A DNA stretch of 55,468 bases, the filler included, from Platydemus manokwari (taxonomy: Eukaryota): assembly GCA_037951405.1 (NCBI GenBank). It is 5 parts of 5 records of this genome, joined end to end, with 100 filler letters (N's around TTAATTAATTAA, not from the genome) between each part and the next. Parts side by side here need not be neighbours in the genome. Positions count along the whole stretch, not along the records: positions 1 to 14,131 come from JBBMOY011521411.1; 4 more parts are not named here. One strand, given 5' to 3'. Positions 130 to 13,173 of the stretch are shown here, piece by piece. Below the pieces are notes generated by a model. It made no database searches. It saw only the letters and a program-made list of their open reading frames with translations, and had not been told where the DNA came from. Position 1 is the stretch's first letter; every line of letters begins with the position of its first letter. A program made the translations under genes and the position numbers.

Positions 130-3100
130 CTTCAATTAGAGATGAACCAGGCTCGAGAGGAAAACGGAATTCAACTGGATACATTCCATATGTATAATCC
201 GAAGTTTCCTTTTTAAACGACGAAAATTGAGCTTTCGTCTTCTCTAATTCAATCTAGTGAAATTACAAATTTCATTAAGCATCAAACAAGAAAATCAATA
301 ATAGAACTCACCACTTCTTCTGGTAGATTGTTTGGATCGATTGCCTGAAATAAGTAAGAGAATTGTTAATTAATTATCCAATCAAAATGATTCTATTTTA
401 AATACTAGACAAGCAACCAAAGGTTACTTTATAATCAATCGTTTCAAAATCTTAAATGAATCAATGTATAAATAAACCTTTGATTTGAATTGTCCATTTG
501 GAATATTAACACCTCCAAATTTAATGTCAACCAAATAGTCAACAAGATCTGTCGGTGTGTAATAGATACTTTGAGTTCCATTTCCATTGTTTTCAATGTC
601 AACTGGTAATGACAAATTAGATTTTACTTCACCATTCTCTGTTAACGGTAAAACTCGACAAGTGACTTTACCATCTCCAGCTTCAGATGTATTTACAGTG
701 ATCATCATTTCAGTGTCCACCAATACGTATTCTTTAACACCATCTGAAATATTTATGAATAAAGAATATGAGCTTATAAAATTAGAAGTTTATCGAGATG
801 AATGATAAAATTAAAATTCATTCATTCACATTTAATAAAGGAATTAATAAATCAATCAATAAAATCACCTTCAAAAAAGCATTTGCTTGCATCTCCAACA
901 CTAGCAACATTGACTGTGAATGGACTATTTTTAACAGGAACATCATCAAATGACACTGTAATGCAATGTTTGCCAGAATCAACAGGAACATATTGACAAC
1001 AATATATTCCTTTGCCTTCGTCGATAATATCAAATGGTAATAACAAATCATCAGGATTCTGGAATTATTTTATTATTTTATGACAGATCTGTGAACATAT
1101 TAATTTACCGAGAGAGATAATTGAATGTCACCATGACCAGCCTCCGATACATCGATGTGAAATTGTACAGGTACTGAAGGAGCCAAAAATCCTCCAGTTG
1201 GATCAATACCTTCACCAACGACTTTGACTTTGTTTATTTCCGATCTTGGTAAGATATTTACATGGAACGGAGCTCCTGGAATTGAAGTGTTTCCGTGTTT
1301 CATTTCAATCGAATGAGGACCGACTTGAGTTGGAGTGAAGATAACATCATAAATTCCAGGCATTGCATTTTCACGAGCTTTGACTTCGACTGGGAATTCG
1401 TTTCCTTGATCATCTTTACAGGATGCCTATAATATCAGTTTTATTAAATTAGTCATTATATATAATAATAAAATAACGATAAGTGTTCCTTTAATAATAA
1501 CAACATAGATTAAAATATAAAATCCAAACCGTAAATGGGGCTTCTCCAGCTCTTGAAGCGTCAACAGCAAATGTCAAGGGCTCGTTAATACGATTAATAC
1601 TGTCTGGTTTAATTGATTCTCCGTAGCATTTGATGTTGCTAGTATTGATCGGATCCCGAATGGCCAATTTAAATGGACTATCTGTAAACAAAAAAATATT
1701 CTCAATGGATATCTAAAATTCTTTTGAAATCTATAACATAATTCAACAGAAAACAAACGAAAACAATAGTAGTAACGTATTGTTTAGTTACCAATTTTTA
1801 ATTGAGAAATACTCTGGCAATTGGCACAGAAACCAATAACTTGTGAGTCACCAATATTAAGATGTTCATGACTATCATTGACCCCAGGGTATAAACTACT
1901 TCTATGCCGATCATACAATACAATTCTATTTAGATCACATAACGATTGGGTATTACTTTTCGACATAAAATTAGTTGATGATGTTAGTAATTTATTTGAA
2001 TTTCCATATCCATTGTAACTCGGCATTGCAGAAAATCCACGTGAATGTCGTATTTTCTTATTCCACTGCTTATCGGTTTTGCTTAAATTTTCGCTCTTAG
2101 ATAAAAATTGGTCACACGTAAAGGAATTCGATATTAACGGTTTGAATCCATCACTACAACACGAATGAGCAGTGACGGCACTTCGTTGTTTAAAAGATTT
2201 GCTACTGGTGAATATATTTTCAAGACGATTAATGTTCGATCGTTTGAGTTCATTTATACACGGATCTGTATTCACTGATGTGATATCTGTGATTGATAAT
2301 TTATCCGATCTTGACAACAAATTCATTTCATTCCGTTTCGCTACACCATTAAATGAACTTTTGATTTGTTTAGGAAACTTGTTCGGTAAAATCGAACGCC
2401 TATTATCCATCCCACTACTATCAGTCGATATTGAAAATGATAACAGATTTGACATGACACTATCTTCATACACTGACGAAGCTCGAACAGAAATACATTT
2501 ATTTGGTTGAGTTTTACCACAATTGAAATTAGTGTGAAAACCACCTCCTCCTGATTGGACAGATTTTATCCGATTCATACATCGGAATCGAGACCTATCA
2601 GGTGTTTCATTAATAGAAGAAACTGATTCGTAACCGAGTTCTTGGCGTAGAGATTCCGAATTTCGATTGATTAATTCATCGACAAATGACGTTTGCTTCA
2701 ACAATTCTTGAAGAGATACACGTTTGGACTTATCGGGAAAATAATTTTGCAAATTGGAAGTCGAAGAACATTGAAACACATTACTTTGTCGCAAAATGTT
2801 TTTCATATTGAAATCAGAATTATCATTTTCATAAATATTATTTGCTTGCTTCTTAGTATAATTCAATGGTGGTAAAGGCGATGATAAAGTCGGTGTTAAT
2901 GGCGGTGGTGGTAAGGGTGGTGGTGGAGGAATTGGAAATTCATCTGTTATATCCTGAATATAATTCAATGAATCGGCTTTCGACCAGGAAAAGTGGACAT
3001 CTTCCGGTGATTGGAAATCGATTTTCTCATCAGTGTTCAATATGCGATTGCTTTGAGAAATACGAGGCAATGAATTAGACTTCAAATAATTTCGTATTAA

Positions 3101-6100
3101 CATGGAAGATTCATTCGATGAGAAATTCGTTGTGAATAATCGATCTGGATTCTGAAAGCACGGACGGATGGATTTGAGAGCTACTTGTTTAGAATATTCA
3201 TCACAAAGTAGTGTAAAACAAACGTAAAATGGCAGCTTGTTACGAATGTGAATGGAATTTTTATAATTTAGAGAATATGCTACATGGGATGTGATCTGAA
3301 TACAAGATTGACCAACATCGTATATTTCACCAAGTTGGTCTTGTTTTATTATATCAATAGAATGATAAATCTTCTTATCAATATTGGTGGATATTTTTTT
3401 GGGTTTATTTGATAAATTATTTTGATTTGTAGTAAATGTATGAGGTTGAAATTCATTATAATTATTCAACATCTTGCATATAAAACGTTCATCGACTTTC
3501 ATTTCTGAGTTTAAAGAATTAAAATCATCGAATTGTTTTATCTTTCCATCCGATAAACTTTTTGAACTTAATGAATTCGATTTTCCACTAAGCAGTTGTT
3601 GATCGATTTCTTCATTGGTTTCAATATTGGGTAAAAACAAGTTGCAATCATCAACAGCCACTTCTTCGTCGTCAAATATTTGATCTACATATGACTGAAT
3701 GACCTCATTATTCAACATTTCGATTCGTGGGCTATTAATACAATTCAATCTGTCCACTACTGAATCGCAATGCTGCCAGAATCGTTTAATGCAATGGTAA
3801 TCGATTTCTTTCAATTCGAAAATTCGTGAATCTTCTATCTTCATTAATGACTGTGGTTCGATGAATCTGAAACAATTTTTGTTTTTGCTGAATGATTTCT
3901 TGGCTATTTTGTTTGAATGAGTGGGTTTGATCAAAGAAATTGTTGATACTGATGTTAATGTATTGACATTGACATTATTATTATAATTTGCATTTGAACA
4001 CTGTTTAATATCATCAAAAGGAAAACTTGGCATCTTAAATGATTCATCTGAACCAAAATTATTCATCAAATTCTCATGAGAAAATTCTGAAGTATCAATC
4101 GATATGTCTGATGGAGGATCTGGTAGTAAACCTTCTTTATCAATAATTGTTTTATTATATTTGCTCATAGGATGTTTAACTATCTGTCGAACAATAGTAG
4201 GCAAAGGTGGTTTAGCAGCATCGGGTCGTTCTGGACTCAGATTTGGAGACTTGCAAGGCATTGGTATCGAAAATGTGATAATATCCGTGGATCTTGGTTT
4301 CTTTTTCAAATTATCAGATGATAATGATCGTCGACAAGGAATATGTTTCAATTGAGAATCACCATTTGGTGTACTAGGTGCACTACGTCTTACGAAAGAC
4401 ATTGGTGAATGTAATGCCTTGCTTGGAAATAGTTCCATATCTTCGTCACCACTTGCCATTCTGCCAATTTCATCTCTCAATGATGACCGGCTAGTAGCTT
4501 GAGAGGTACGATAACTATTCACCAAAGTGTTTTCAGAATAGCCATCCTCACTACTATCTTCAAATAATGGTGGTAATCTTGGACAACTTTGTAATTCAGG
4601 AATAAACTTTGTCAGGGATTTTTGTCCCGTATTAACATTCTCTGATTCAATAGGAAGTGAAAAATCATCACATTTCCTTTTCGCAAGACAATCTTGATCT
4701 TTATTTTGTCTGGATTTAATGAGATAAGTTTGATGCATATATTCCTCTGCATCTAATAAACTACCAGCAGATGCATCGAGAAACAAATCTGAAAAATCTG
4801 TTGATATCGATAAACTGTCATTAATGTCTTTAAATTTCCATTCATCATCTGACGGATTTTCTTGATCTTCTGAGAGTTCACTCAGTGATTTTGTTAAATT
4901 ATTCTTCATTGTAGCTGTATTAATAGTACCAAGATCATTAATTCCAGAAGACGTAGAAAATTTTTGAACCGTAGTACGATAATTACTCGCTGGCTTCGTG
5001 AAATTTTGGAATGTAGATTTGGAGTTAATCTTTGATTTACTGCTTTGATTGAAACTGATGGAGTTACTTCCACTATTCGATAATGAATGTTGGTCGGAAA
5101 TGGTCGATACAAAAGACAGATTATCTATATATGCTGGAGTTTTTTTCATCGAACTTAATGATTCGTCGCAATTTGATTGAATCTTCGAATGGAAATTAGG
5201 TGACAGATCAAAATACGAATCAACATTAGGAGGTTGAGGAAACGTTAATTTTTCATTAAAACCTGAACTGTTGTTAAACGATTGAAGAATACTATCAGCA
5301 TCTGTGCGCTCATCATCCATGGTGGCATTTAAAGATAACAATTCTTCATATGTAGATTCTTGATGCAAAACGTGCTTTGGAAAGCCTGATAAAGTATTTT
5401 GTCAATTTTATCAATGTGACACAAACACATGGAAAGTTCTATAAAATATCAAAGAATTGTTTCGAGTTCATCAAATTTGGGAACTAACCAGAGTTTCCCC
5501 AAGAGAAATTTTGTTCTAAAGAAAGAGTTCTATTTTGTAATTTGGAAAAACAACTTGAAATCATAAAGAATATTCAGAGCGAGAAAGTTGCTGCTATACC
5601 GGTGATTAATCAATTCTCATGACTATGAATTCAAAGGTACCTATTGATGATGAAACACGCTTGGAAAAAACTCAATCTCTGATATGGGTGTGCAGATTTT
5701 ATCAAAATTTCTAACAGCTATGATTCAACTATTATAACAACAAAATCCAATCTTTTTTATGTCAATGATGGATGAGACATAATAGATATCATAAATGTTC
5801 AGTATGATATTCAGCTTAGTAATAAAACTATTCATCATCCGTCTGAGTAGACACGATATCCCATTTTAAAGACAAAAGTGAATGATAAATATATTAAATA
5901 TTTATGATTCCAAACAGATAAACATGAATGATTCATCTCAAAATTATACGATTTGACCGGATTCTCAGAATCAAATTTGTCGACAAAGTTCTAATTTCAT
6001 TAGTATCATACACAGATACACAGTTGACTGTAAATACTTGAAAATCAAATCAATAAATGTTGAGTTCATTCGTATTTAAGTTATGTTTCACATATAAATC

Positions 6101-9100
6101 CATACAGGTTAAATTCTAAGGTGAATTGTCTATCGAAAATGTCACGAATATGTATATCTAACACGATCCATCATTGACAAATCGTAAATATTCATTATAT
6201 TCAGAATTCATTAATTTAAAAATACTTTAACAAAAGAAAGATTAATAAAATGCGGTATTGAAAAAGAATGTAAAAATTGAATACCAACTAGCCCCGGTAA
6301 AAAAAACCTAACAGCCACTGTGAGACAACTGAACCAATTAATAGAAATAAATATTATATAATCATATTCTAATCAGAAATTTCAACAAATAAATCACCTT
6401 TAACATCTACATCATTAAACTTGATGTATATATCATAGGTTCCTGGTATCGTTGCCGAGTATTCAACAGTGCATGTACCATCCAAATTATCCACACAATT
6501 GATTTTAGCATCAGACGGTCCTTCAATTGCCAAACCCAAATTTCCTTGACCAGCTCCATCAAGATCGATTGTGAAATAGTTTTGTTGGTTAGTATAACCA
6601 CCTTTGAGACCATCTCCATACACCAATACTCGGCTTGGATCACAGCCAGGCACAACTTCGATTTTAAAAGGACTGTTCTTTATTGGTAGATCTTCATAAG
6701 TTACTTCCAAACTATAAATTCCTGAGAAAATTACGTATGACGTCATCATCAATGTTCTGTTCAATTATTTACCAGCATCATAAGGCGAGTAGCTGCACGA
6801 ATAGGTACCATCATCATTGCTTTTTACCATACTCGCTGAATTGAATCCACTGGGATCTGTAAACACAGCTTTCACTGCTCCTTTACTTTTAGCATCAATC
6901 GCTCTGGCATTGACAGTAAATCTTATGAAAGACTCTTGGAAAATTTCTGTAAAAATCAAATAATTTTGTTCGATTTCTTAAAACCGAATTTACTGGATTC
7001 CAAATGCTCAATGAAAACCTTTGAAACATCAATGTCAGGTTTAATCGTGATTTGGAATGGACTTCCAGGAATATTGACACCATCATATGTAACAGAACAA
7101 TTATATACTGGTCCAGCAGTGTTTGGTTGATATTCAACATCAAATATATCGGCATCGGAATCATTAACAATCTTCAATGGTAACATATTGCCGATTTCAT
7201 CTGTCAATTCTACGGCAAGCACACCTTGTCCGGCATGTGTTGTATCAATACTGAAGTGAGCTGGTGAGAATCGTGTAGCAGACACAATGCCTTGACCAAT
7301 CATTCTGACATTACTCGGTACTGATGGTTTGGAAACTTTCACCTAATCAATGAAGATTTTTATAAACTTATATCGATAATTAAACATTTTCTCAAAATTC
7401 TTAAAAGTATCAAATAAAGTCTGTTTCCAGTCAAATTTTAAGCAAAAACAGTATAAAGTCAGTAGGCTTTCTTCAAATAAAATTATTTCAATTTTTGATA
7501 GAAAATTTGTTATATTTTACACTACTTATAATAGTCAATAGTATTTATTTAAATCGATATTTATACATACTTTGAATGGACTTTTTGGAACCGATTGATC
7601 ATCACAATTGACGAAGATTTTATGATTACCAGCAACGAACGGTTGATAGGTACAAGAATATTTTTTATTACCAATTGGTGTAATAGTGATTGGTACGAGT
7701 TCACCATTGCTAAGATAACAATGTGCTTCAGGTTTGATATCCGATTTATATTCACTACAATCGATTGTAAATTCATTTGGTTCATCGAGCTTGCCACTAT
7801 CCTTCATAATACCTGGTCCAGAGACTTTTATCTGCAATAAACAATGGGGTAACATAAAAAAAATCGAAAAAATTGTTGTATTTCTCACTTTTGATACGTC
7901 GGTCTTTCCAGATGATGGTAAGATATTCGCCATAAATGGTGAATTTGGAATGTCTTCACCGTCACACAAAACATGTATAGCATATTCACCAGCAACGGTT
8001 GGCCAGTAGCAAATGGTTGCACTACCATCTTGATTGTCCACACATTCAATTTTGGCTTGGCTTGGACCCTCAATTGAAAAACCTAAAACCATATTTAAAT
8101 CAAAATTCAAAATGAGATCACAAGCACTCACCTAAACTTCCCAATTCACCATTGGTATCTGTCACAAATATAGCTGGTTTTTCTGCAACACCAGTTTCTA
8201 ATCCACTTCCATACGCGACGATGTGTGATTCTTTGCTAGGCATTACGTTAATCTAAATTATATTTGTTTAACATTTATTGGCTTATTATTTGCTGATATT
8301 TCATACTTTGAATGGAGATCGGACTACCGGTACATTATCATAGTCAATTTTCAATTCATAAATTCCTGGCTTTGTAGGGATATATAGACATTCAAAATGA
8401 TTTGGATTCACTTCAACAAGTTTTATCGATTCTTCAGATTTACCGGGTGTTGTCAATCTGGCAGTCAGTACACCTGTTCCGGCATTTTCAGTATTGATTT
8501 TAATATCAGCTTTATCTCCGACCCTTAGACCATTACTCTGTACTCCACGTCCTGTTACCACAACAAGTTTAGCATTGCTCCCTATTTTTTTTGGAAAATA
8601 ACAGTTAATAAATTATAAAATAATTATTTCGATGAAATAAAGTTCAAATATTATTTCAAATGAACCGTAAAAGATCAGTTAAACTAACATTGTATTGGTA
8701 ATGTTAAAGATCAAAGTTTAATGCAAAATAATAAGTCGCATCATTCAGACAACAAAATAATCTATAGTTAGGCTAACAATTAACTTACGCACTACACTGC
8801 AATTCCGATAATAATAAATAATAATAATGATAAATATTATATAATTGTATTATTAAAAATATATTAAAGCGTTATCTTAAATTGAAAATATCGTTACTAG
8901 TCCAATCGTATCTCATCTCAAACTTCAACCAATCATTTTCAAACAAGTTTTTTAGACAACTTTCCCATCAATAACATAACAAAATCAATCAATCCTTTTG
9001 TTTACTGACGAATACCATCAAAATGATTCTTAGATATTTTTAGTGAATATCACAACCAATCCATTGAAAAATCAATGAGAAAATCACACAATTACCTGTC

Positions 9101-12100
9101 AACTTAGGAATAACGAATATGTATTTATATATATTAGCAATTGAAATATGAGACAGATAATTATCTTGTACTTGGTTTATAGATTTTTTTATATTTCTAC
9201 TGTCGCGTTTGATTGTGCGTAAAAATTGTTTTACAACTCATCATTCAATAATATTTGCCAAGTGATTATTCTCTTTTATTATGCTATTATTATTGTTAAT
9301 TTTTTTTATTAGATCAACTAAACAAAAAAACCAAATCAGCATATTTATCTATTGTTGATATCATTTATCATTTCTGGATCACTGGAAAGATCATTGAGAA
9401 TGAGCAGAATTTATAAATGTAAAAATGATAAACTATAAAATAGATGAAATTTTTTTCATACTGCGGTTTATGGTGATATTTATAATATATTCTAAATATA
9501 ATTTACTTGGTGAAACAAGTACACCGAAAGGTGAATTCGTTACTTGACGATTCGAGAAGAAGACATTTATTGAATGAACACCAGTTTCTTGAGCAGTATA
9601 TTCCACTGAATATAGGACCGGGGATATTTGAGTGATTTTTGGTATTACTTTGTTTTGATCACCGGTTGGATTAAGAATTACACAAGTAATTTCACCAGAA
9701 CCAGCATCTGTAATTGAAACAATTTCCATTAATCTCGACAACACATTTTATATCACTATCACCTTCGGTTGATATCGTAAAATTTGAGACAACAGATATC
9801 ATAACACCAGTTTTTTCAACACCGGGTCCAAACACTTTCACTTTGGTCGGATCACCAGATAATTTATCGATTGTTACAGTAAATGGTGAACGAGGAACAT
9901 CTTTATCAGCATATTTCACAGTGATTGTGTAGGTTCCTTTGGTTGGTGGAACATAAGTGCATTTGAAACAGTTAGTCTTGTCTGATAATTCTTGTATTTT
10001 AACCTAGGAGAAAATGAGTTCTTAAATTCAATGATCTTATTTAATGAATGAAACGAATAAATATATTTTAGCATTGTTTAGAAATAGATTGATACTTCAT
10101 CTAAATTTAAGCTCTTAATCCATTTGGATACATCTTTGCAGAAAATAATACACCATCTTGAAAATTGAAAATAAATTGTATATGGCTTGTTATATTGATA
10201 TATGCATTCAAAAATGTTAATAAAATATCCAAAGTAAACCATATTTCTTCACACACAAACAGATTGTGCACAATGAATTTGTCACTAATAAATAAGCTTC
10301 ACATAAACCTTATTAGATCAATGTTGATATTGCTGAAAATCATGCTATAACAAGTTATCGAGTATAGTAGGGCCTAGTGTTGAAATTAGAGCTCAGAAAA
10401 TTTAACAATTTTTCAGTATCTTCAATAATTCAATCACGAAATTTAAATTCATCTTTAAAGTTCCAAAGAATTGCATACAAATTTCTCATCGTAATAAATG
10501 AAATTATAGGATAAATTTCACGTGAACAATCGATCGAAAATTATTTAAATTATTACAGAGAACATTGGACCCTAATCAGTCGTTAGAATTTAGTGATAAT
10601 AATCGGACTTTGAAAAATAATAAACAAAATGCTTGATTATTAAAACATTCAAACAATTTCAACGTCGACATATTTGAGCAAAGCGAGCCAACAATTTTGA
10701 CTGATACCAAAAAAATGAAATGACTCGATATTTATCGACGTTTGTGTGTGCTTGTGTCCGTATGAAATAGTCATTGCATGATGTAGCAATTCTCAATGGC
10801 AATATGCAAACTGAGATTAATAATTCACACACAAACTTGTGAATAAGCACACTGAACTAAATCATTTGTTATATTCTGTGATCAATTTCCGTCATGACTC
10901 ATTCTATTTATACTTGAATAATGCCAATACATATTTCAAGGTTTATGACAAATAGATTGATTATGATTTTTAAGACCTACTTCAATTTGTTTACCATTGC
11001 CATCAACAATATTGATATCCAAAGTTCCTTTACCAGCACTGACGGTGTCTACTGTAAATTCAGCCGGTTCACCGACAATTAAGTCCTTCGATTCAACTCC
11101 TGTTAAATAAATTTATAAAGGAATTAATAAAAAGAAGAATTAAATTTAAAATAATCAAGTCTTATTATAATGTCATTTAAAATGACAATAACATACACAA
11201 AACAGCACACATTGAAATGGAGTCAACAGAAACGTATTGGAGTATAAAGATAAACAATATCAGATTAAGTATGCGTCAGACAAAGATTTGGAAAACTAAT
11301 ATTATTATATGTGAAAAATAAATCAAGCCTACGAAAAACGTAATTACTTAAATACAGTTTCAAATTTCTAGACTAATACAAACTTCTAGAAATATTCATG
11401 AAGTCTACTAAACATATTTTCTTCGATAAATAATTTCTATGGTTAAATCAGTTGAATTTTAAAAACTATTTTCAAATATATTATTATACATAAATGGTCC
11501 AAACATGTTTGCAGCTTTAGTTTCATCTTATTTGTTGTTTTGAATCGGTTTAGATGATATGAAGCAAATATACACACACACACTTTATAAATCAATTTTT
11601 GATTTGTTTTGTTTAAATATTTCAAAGTATCAAATAATAATCAAATGAAAAATAGGAATATATGACACAAATTTCCCATCAAAAATTAAATATAATTTCC
11701 GGAAGATATGTAATCAAAATGATTTAATCGATTATTATACAATCATATTTGATAATTTTAATAAAATATTACATAATTTAAATGATTTTTCTTGGAAAAT
11801 ATTTTCGATTTAGATTCTTATCAATTTCTACAATTTTCATCAAAGTTTTTCAAATAAAAATATTAGAATTATTATTTTATCGAAATCATTAAAATTATTA
11901 TGATACGAAATGAATATAAATGATAGCAAATGTAAAGCAAACTTACCGGAACCATAAACTCGGACTTTATTTGAATTGAGTTTTGGTCTGAGAACTGCAC
12001 CGGGTTTCAATTTGGCATTTGGAAATTGACTTAAATAAGTCATCATTGCCTTTTCATCAACATTTGGATCGATCATTTCTTCCGGTTTAATAAGTTGTGG

Positions 12101-13173
12101 CACATTCAACCACTGTTCAGCAGTATCCATTGCATCTTTAGTATTTGTCATTGCATCAACAGGTTTCCAATCTTGCCAATCTGGACACAAACCAGGAGCG
12201 CACGAGTCCACTAAGGCACCAATGGCTGTACCATCATTCCAGTCGGTAGTGAGATTGGTCACTACTTTATCACCCATTTTCCCTTGGATCCATGTCATCA
12301 TTTTTTGTTTGGGAGTTTGTTTGGTTTCCTAATATATTTAAGTAATTGCTTCCTCACATTTATAATATAAAAATATTCATTGCTGTGACAATTCAATTTC
12401 ACAAAAAGTGCATTGAAATTTAATTTGAAACTTACTTCTGATAAAATTCTCTAATATAAAATAAATTCATTAATAATATTGAATTAATAATATTAATAAT
12501 ATTGAATTATTATTTTCATTATTAATCATTATAAATATAATTTATGGGATTTCAAGGCATAAGTGTTAAAAAAATACCTTATTTTCCTGAAATATGAAGA
12601 AAACAAATATTAAAATTGATACTTAAAATACTACAAAATCATTAATTACCGTATTAATGGCTTCACCCTCCCATATCGATGTCGAAATGGAATAATGTAA
12701 AATTAGTGCCCATACAAGACCCAAAATCAGTTTTAATCGACAATCCACAATATCAGAACTATCTGAAATGACAATTTTAAAATTAAAATGACTTTCAATA
12801 AAAAACGTTAACCAATATTGATAAGTTTTAATCCTTCTTTATCTTCCAAATATCGCAAAACCATTGTCACATTTTCCAATTTTTGAGTTCTGAAGACGGT
12901 CTTTTTATTCGTATAAGTAAATTTATGTTCCGATAAAACTGCAATTAAAGCCATTAGCTTTAAACCATCCGAAAAATCATTTTGCAAATCATTGATAGAT
13001 TGATTTGCTTTCTTTAAGTGTACATTAACCCATCTTGTAAATGTATTTTTTTGGATAATTTTCCACTGAGCATCATCAGCTAATTCTCTTTCAGTTGAAG
13101 GCATGCTTTCGTCACTATCACAAATGATAATAGTATTGTCATCGCTCTTTGATATATAATAATTATTCTGCAT
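130..13173 (-). CDS. FLN: Filamin (CH1-CH2 actin-binding domain plus at least 11 Ig/filamin repeats); multi-exon, 3' part lies beyond the left edge of the window
   Basis: N-terminus [27 protein letters not shown] and CH2 motif [25 protein letters not shown] match filamins. Repeats show V.VYG.G...F.IDT..AG.G...DN.DGT..V.Y.P...G.Y.I.V.Y.....SPF.V. Phase-consistent GT-AG exons: 13173-12813, 12762-12650, 12328-11947, 11099-10981, 10003-9763, 9707-9507, 8581-8307, 8252-8132, 8082-7889, 7831-7571, 7342-6994, 6946-6773, 6721-6398, (5385-1792), 1681-1530, 1426-1109, 1058-869, 743-478, 344-312, 253-130. Confidence 0.96.
1792..5385 (-). CDS. Giant phase-1/phase-1 cassette exon of filamin (3594 nt, 1198 codons, low-complexity)
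   Basis: Stop-free ORF on the filamin strand. Acceptor ctttatcag at 5386 and donor G|gtaact at 1791. Length is a multiple of 3 and both flanking filamin exons (ending 6398, starting 1681) are phase 1. Confidence 0.8.
12436..12450 (-). CDS. Candidate 15-nt filamin microexon (RILSE)
   Basis: ttttatattag|AGAATTTTATCAGAA|gtaagt; consensus donor, phase 0, no stop. Confidence 0.55.
12578..12586 (-). CDS. Candidate 9-nt filamin microexon (ENK)
   Basis: tatttcag|GAAAATAAG|gtattt within a phase-0 intron in the CH1-CH2 linker. Confidence 0.6.

Follow-up and report, generated by a model that had tools for sequence, protein, structure and literature searches.

We analysed a 55,468-nt stretch of DNA from Platydemus manokwari (assembly GCA_037951405.1; five parts joined end to end, hereafter the window), which carries a piece of a filamin gene on its minus strand. 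Within this gene, a 3.6-kb open reading frame (ORF) separates two exons that encode successive parts of a single immunoglobulin-like (Ig) repeat. This giant ORF is probably an internal coding exon of filamin, spliced in cis between the exons whose facing ends lie at positions 6398 and 1681. Within the 8th Ig repeat, its inclusion would separate strand F from strand G (SPFKLAI) by about 1,198 mostly disordered residues, and would leave the downstream filamin frame unchanged. A design of this kind is not described for any filamin.

The gene was identified as a filamin by two calponin-homology (CH) exons and by a run of Filamin/ABP280 repeat exons (Pfam, Table 1). The actin-binding domain formed by the two CH exons is 66% identical to that of Macrostomum, 63% to that of Elysia and 62% to that of Trichobilharzia. 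Repeats of the Ig rod are borne by at least ten ORF pieces on the minus strand, PF00630 is found on both exons flanking the insert (Pfam Filamin, E = 1.8e-23 and 1.7e-11 on the respective ORFs), and the PDB matches are Ig domains of FLNA, FLNB and FLNC. Among the recognisable Ig repeats of the piece, the interrupted one comes 8th. Its best match in vertebrate filamin C covers residues 1322-1423 and then 1431-1479, which by the repeat boundaries would be Ig12. The first-pass annotation of the window had already counted it as the 8th and likened it to repeat 12 of human FLNA, a reasonable assignment since the filamin C match would fall in Ig12. Its best PDB sequence matches are several filamin repeats of one class.

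The giant ORF has the boundaries of an internal exon. It runs from 5385 to 1792, is 3594 nt long (3 x 1198), and contains no stop in the 1197 codons of its phase-1 frame, whereas the other two frames have 62 and 151. Because of the stop density in these two frames, the probability that it is open by chance is about 1e-28 or less, and a chance ORF was rejected. On the acceptor side, the sequence ...TTTATCAG ends at 5386, with AG at 5387-5386; on the donor side, ...AAA ATT G is followed by GTAACT, with GT at 1791-1790. With AG and GT at its two ends, both in phase 1, the frame is compatible with the neighbouring filamin exons. The upstream one ends in phase 1 as ...GTT AAA G (...DVDVK + G) and is followed by GT at 6397-6396, and the downstream one is preceded by ...GTTTACAG and opens with AT AGT CCA TTT, finishing a codon for D. 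The skipped product would read DVDVK-D-SPFKL, and the included product DVDVK-G-FPKHVL...LKI-D-SPFKL. The splice sites of the giant ORF look as ordinary as those of the neighbouring exons, and its codon choice and that of the Ig exons of filamin are correlated (r = 0.89). The ORF has no ATG before codon 22 (MDDERT...). Six codons upstream of the acceptor there is an in-frame TGA, and two codons past the donor a TAA. All elements of the ORF that the first-pass annotation had listed (5385..1792, 3594 nt, acceptor and donor, phase 1, no ATG at the start) were reproduced, as were, from the exon sequences, the reading frames it had given for skipping and inclusion.

Searches used single exons or database proteins as queries. 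A word-index search with the insert found two relatives, P0001 and P0002. The former comes from L001, a genomic contig of 4.5 kb in the Logan assembly of SRR33002330, where the giant exon is 3636 nt long, a multiple of three, and its protein is 54% identical to that of the window. The L001 frame starts right past an AG and stops right before GTAACT (acceptor context ATTGACAAA..TTATCAG/GC, donor AAAATTG/GTAACT, the slash marking the splice site). It is followed by a 127-nt intron and then by the orthologous filamin exon (4204 onward) in matching phase, which gives LKI-D-SPYKL. The latter, P0002 (UniParc UPI0006107BC1, 1568 residues), a gene model from a third species, consists of filamin Ig sequence, the insert, ...FKY-G-SPFKLPIRD..., and then two further filamin exons, so that the model runs across two further filamin introns past the insert. 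Its identity to the window is 85% in the upstream Ig exon (residues 6-118), 72-74% in the downstream Ig exons and 45% in the insert. With the filamin tail of P0002 as query, mostly vertebrate filamins were retrieved, at no more than 38% identity. A similar exon at the same position in relatives, which had been suggested as a check, is present in L001 and in P0002.

Relatives of the insert are few. A search of 1.84 billion representatives, made without length limit, returned P0001 and an 86-residue fragment only, a scan of the JGI metagenomes for relatives returned none, and exact look-up of the window's own giant ORF gave no entry. Genomic DNA was also looked for in the cases of P0002 and of the Trichobilharzia filamin P0003, and none was found. 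Among the two relatives in the 1.84 billion representatives, the one with flanking sequence sits at the same filamin position. Because the searches of these representatives and of JGI gave so few relatives, the insert is confined to a narrow lineage.

Comparison of the window with L001 over the whole giant exon gave a proportion of synonymous differences (pS) of 0.76, at which synonymous sites are saturated, and a proportion of non-synonymous differences (pN) of 0.27. Protein identity ranged from 34% to 71% between blocks of 100 codons, and the three-way alignment of the window, P0001 and P0002 displayed about 15 near-invariant short blocks between variable, indel-rich stretches. The giant ORF as a real, selected coding sequence is supported by these comparisons, which show purifying selection. 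Selection of the coding type reaches up to the splice site: the 21 codons that precede the first ATG show 9 synonymous differences for 13.5 sites (pS 0.67) versus 5 non-synonymous differences for 49.5 sites (pN 0.10; binomial p = 6.6e-4), and they are also kept in the P0002 protein. Upstream of the acceptor, an in-frame stop is met after 6 codons in the window and after 10 codons in L001, with no ATG in between. Given these stops in both genomes, splicing to an upstream exon is the only way in which the 21 codons can be translated.

These codons bear on a first alternative, in which the insert is an independent gene nested on the same strand within a filamin intron, expressed from its own promoter or from a spliced leader (SL) added at the AG at 5386, and translated from the ATG of codon 22 to the TAA at 1784. 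The Met at codon 22 is indeed conserved in 3/3 sequences, a stop lies directly past the donor in the window, and the product has neither filamin similarity nor a domain; moreover, the host is probably a flatworm, and flatworms use SL trans-splicing. However, a nested gene would not account for coding-type codons before the ATG that start exactly at the AG, and would leave the conserved GTAACT donor at the end of the ORF without a role. Nor is the stop past the donor conserved, as read-through in L001 extends over 57 codons and enters the next exon out of frame. Neither AATAAA nor ATTAAA was found in the 110-nt intron that follows the insert in the window (intron B) or in its 127-nt counterpart in L001. 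Flatworm spliced leaders end in AUG; joined at the AG, such a leader would set translation in frame 0, where a stop follows 18 codons on in each of the two species. A start from a leader of this type was rejected as falling in the wrong frame. Same-strand nested intronic genes do resemble the giant ORF in being long ORFs unrelated to the host protein and wholly contained in a host intron. They differ from it in that the giant ORF is a conserved AG-to-GT frame that lacks both a poly(A) signal and a usable start for the first 21 conserved codons.

No start of its own for the whole conserved frame, and no 3' end of its own, were found for the insert, and we consider a nested gene unlikely. The comparative data (conserved AG and GT, pre-ATG codons, upstream stops, lack of a poly(A) signal, P0002) favour a frame-preserving filamin exon, in line with what the first-pass annotation had proposed. 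It had further remarked that read-through of the donor reaches the TAA at 1784 and could yield a truncated isoform. The first part holds in the window; the second does not stand, given the read-through in L001 and the missing AATAAA and ATTAAA.

The intron upstream of the insert (intron A) is conserved between the window and L001 only over its last ~21 nt (5386-5406). This segment comprises ATTGAC and AAA...TTATCAG, with the in-frame TGA at 5404-5402; ATTGAC is a branch-point-like element near the end of the intron, and fits the consensus of a putative branch point. L001 offers 440 nt of the upstream intron, and outside this block no alignable or conserved element was detected in them. A second alternative may be judged on this segment: in a short filamin isoform, the giant ORF could serve as an alternative first coding exon, with transcription from a start in intron A or a spliced leader added at 5386, translation from codon 22, and a disordered N-terminal arm joined through the donor at 1791 to the downstream Ig repeats. 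Such an isoform would resemble the short forms of Drosophila cheerio and jbug that lack CH domains. This alternative agrees with the conservation of the donor, of the phase match to the downstream exon and of the ATG, and in Drosophila short filamin isoforms that begin at internal starts have been documented (bioRxiv 10.1101/2020.10.13.337626). It leaves unexplained, however, why the 21 codons are under coding-type selection and why an acceptor and branch-point block is conserved upstream of the ATG, and the L001 intron offers no conserved element. We regard an alternative first exon as improbable.

Several points weigh against an internal exon. The joining of the giant ORF to the filamin exons in mRNA is read wholly from sequence comparison, and the comparative sample is small, with two full-length homologues (P0001/L001 and P0002). 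P0002 is not an independent proof of splicing because it is a fragmentary model with both ends in introns and is probably ab initio. It starts at an ATG in the intron that precedes the exon equivalent to 6721 (residues 1-9, MEYVSIAFL, then GTYILDV...), its residues 1549-1568 run through a donor into an intron, and it is a fragment of a longer filamin gene. The ATG conserved at codon 22 (MDDERT/MDEDRT) could start a separate protein. The prediction of disorder given below was made by AlphaFold2 from a three-sequence alignment. Finally, we know of no precedent for an Ig domain with an F-G loop of 1,198 residues, and such a domain might not fold.

A search for sequencing runs that contain positions 1500-6700 of the window returned one run of unknown kind, X1, and no RNA run. 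For X1, 100% of the sampled words matched, yet only four chance pieces of ~20 nt and one spurious joint were placed. It is probably the source assembly and brings no independent support.

More distant orthologous filamins lack the insert. In Trichobilharzia (P0003) the two flanks align with residues 958-1064 and then 1067-1116, in Macrostomum (P0121) with residues 937-1043 and then 1046-1089, and the filamin of Elysia, like vertebrate filamin C (1322-1423, then 1431-1479), is contiguous across the insertion point. In the genome of Macrostomum lignano (L003:28637-29605, GCA_002269645.1), residues 878-1200 of P0121 are encoded by one uninterrupted exon. Because this region is uninterrupted, the two introns around the giant exon are not ancient in flatworm filamins; they may share a common origin with the insert, in the lineage of the window. 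A decayed homologue of insert codons ~195-474 was found on a 744-nt contig of a metagenome assembly (L002; ENA ERZ27257134, contig k141_1795707). It carries a TGA and a TAA inside the most conserved block of the insert, as well as six or more indels whose lengths are not divisible by three. It may be what is left of an exon lost in a related species, or a pseudogene derived from a duplicate, and a contig of this length is compatible with either. Its decay suggests that the insert can be lost, with filamin presumably kept. Together with the insert-less orthologues, it is indirect evidence that the insert may be dispensable.

If the giant ORF is an internal filamin exon, it may be optional, that is, a cassette exon, as skipping would bring back a canonical end to the repeat, and another organism has a decayed copy. 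We place this at roughly even odds with a constitutive exon, for which all filamin made from the gene would carry the insert. The constitutive case is contained in the internal-exon reading and, measured as a share of the whole, is plausible with well under half of the probability. The insert is a multiple of three in the window and in L001 (3594 and 3636 nt), a property that is necessary for a cassette and not diagnostic of one because it follows from the ancestral phases of the flanking exons; a constitutive exon would acquire it automatically. Nowhere does the sequence require skipping, the splice sites look ordinary, and the sole gene model, P0002, includes the exon, all of which suits constitutive use. 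The two stops and the frame-shifting indels of L002 speak against it, as do the orthologues that function without the insert in other flatworms, a mollusc and vertebrates.

The insert product is composed of 15% Ser and 9% Asn, with 65% of disorder-promoting residues, and has no match to a Pfam family. AlphaFold2 gave a predicted local distance difference test score (pLDDT) of 27.7, with every residue below 50 and four short helices only. This is suggestive of a disordered product, and the long disordered arm that had been proposed at the outset agrees with the prediction. Two leads from ESM-Atlas feature searches, exophilin-5 and cingulin-like, were below threshold (scores of at most 0.84) and were rejected as chance. 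An ORF derived from a transposable element or repeat was also rejected, as the insert belongs to no Pfam family, has no tandem repeats save a proline run, and is not present in multiple copies.

This proline run belongs to the most conserved part of the insert. The first ten residues of the 13-residue proline motif are invariant in 3/3 sequences, and the motif is directly preceded by the longest invariant block of the insert, of 19 residues. Tandem Repeats Finder calls the stretch a GGTGG-type repeat (2868-2926), and finds no other tandem repeat in the insert. FPIPP would fit the EVH1 class-I pattern FPx-phi-P, and the proline run would fit ligands of profilin or SH3 domains. Other conserved blocks include SAP.TPNGD, KR.SLQELL.QTSF, IRH.RG.SAM and QSLCDLN, and acidic Ser-rich blocks and basic RxxS sites are among the conserved short motifs.

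The insertion point lies right before the (P)GSPF strand, and the PDB alignments of the upstream exon end there, which places the insert in the F-G hairpin of repeat 8. Because the two ends of this hairpin are adjacent in the folded domain, a long loop should be topologically tolerable. The 8th repeat would be the counterpart of vertebrate Ig12, and the disordered loop, anchored at the F-G hairpin of this folded Ig domain, would serve as a docking arm on rod 1. The proline motif, the acidic Ser-rich blocks and the basic RxxS sites could recruit actin regulators and kinases, and phosphorylation could tune the arm. More speculatively, a force pulling strand G out of the domain might release ~400 nm of hidden contour length. 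The complete picture would be that of a small spiralian clade, probably of flatworms, with a 'giant filamin'. Its optional 3.6-kb exon would thread a disordered hub of ~1,200 residues through a ligand-binding-class Ig repeat of rod 1, at the F-G hairpin; this hub, with its Ena/VASP- or profilin-type proline motif and its phosphorylation clusters, would act as a recruitment platform and as a force-gated length reserve. Taken as a whole, we hold this picture to be tentative and rather doubtful.

Filamins are conserved mechanosensing crosslinkers of actin. If the internal-exon reading is true, a folded Ig repeat that takes up a kilobase-scale disordered exon would represent a new route to a signalling or elastic arm in a filamin, and a natural test of the loop size that the Ig fold tolerates in a load-bearing rod. 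It would also be an example of a lineage-restricted giant exon at a site devoid of any intron in a more distant flatworm (Macrostomum).

The closest known case is the 82-residue insertion in repeat 20 of filamin C, which serves in myotilin binding and Z-disc targeting (PMC7216277). Like the giant exon, it is a non-Ig, apparently unstructured stretch inside one Ig repeat. The two differ in size and place (82 residues in repeat 20 of rod 2, versus 1,198 residues in the Ig12-like repeat 8 of rod 1); the filamin C insertion is not a separate giant exon, and has no sequence similarity to the insert of the window. In ankyrin-G (480 kDa) and ankyrin-B (440 kDa), a very long frame-preserving alternative exon adds an extended, largely disordered segment. 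Exons encoding disordered regions are also found in Drosophila Zasp52, a cytoskeletal scaffold (PMC13521563). These cases are analogies of mechanism only: they concern other genes, their inserts lie between domains, and their alternative use is demonstrated, whereas the insert of the window lies inside a folded Ig and is known from its sequence. Described splice variants of filamins include hinge-1 skipping in FLNB and FLNC, and isoforms of cheerio and jbug that differ in rod composition (PMC7216277; bioRxiv 10.1101/2020.10.13.337626). They involve short hinges or whole CH or Ig blocks and, unlike the giant exon, none adds a non-Ig exon of kilobase scale. The descriptions of FLN-1 and of FLN-2 in C. 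elegans, and of isoforms of Jbug and Cheerio in Drosophila, mention nothing similar, and a full-text literature search on filamin with 'giant exon' or 'giant isoform' returned nothing relevant.

Table 1. Position of the insert, its introns and the filamin exons in the window.
Feature	Position	Strand	Evidence
Filamin exon, calponin-homology domain 1, start of actin-binding domain	12808..13173	minus	Pfam CH, E = 2.1e-14
Filamin exon, calponin-homology domain 2	11840..12301	minus	Pfam CH, E = 9.3e-17
Filamin exon 5' of the insert: last part of Ig repeat 7, then strands A to F of repeat 8	6398..6721	minus	Pfam Filamin, E = 1.8e-23
Intron A, 1012 nt, 28% GC	5386..6397	minus	L001 alignment and composition
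Putative giant exon, phase 1 at both ends, +1198 residues, Ser/Asn-rich, ~15 conserved short blocks	1792..5385	minus	Open frame and homologues
Conserved proline motif, 13 residues, insert residues 816-828	2900..2938	minus	Three-sequence alignment and motif scan
Intron B, 110 nt, donor context G/GTAACTA conserved, TAA 2 codons past the donor	1682..1791	minus	L001 comparison
Filamin exon 3' of the insert: strand G of Ig repeat 8 and start of repeat 9	1530..1681	minus	tblastn to P0002 residues 1320-1383

The C-terminal dimerising repeat falls outside the piece of the filamin gene. An Rfam scan of the piece gave no match, and its GC content varies between 22% and 37%. Immediately upstream of the exon that precedes intron A, a further intron is located at 6722-6767 (...YDAG/gtaaat ... 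ttctcag/GA...); it is in phase 1, the same phase as both introns around the giant exon.

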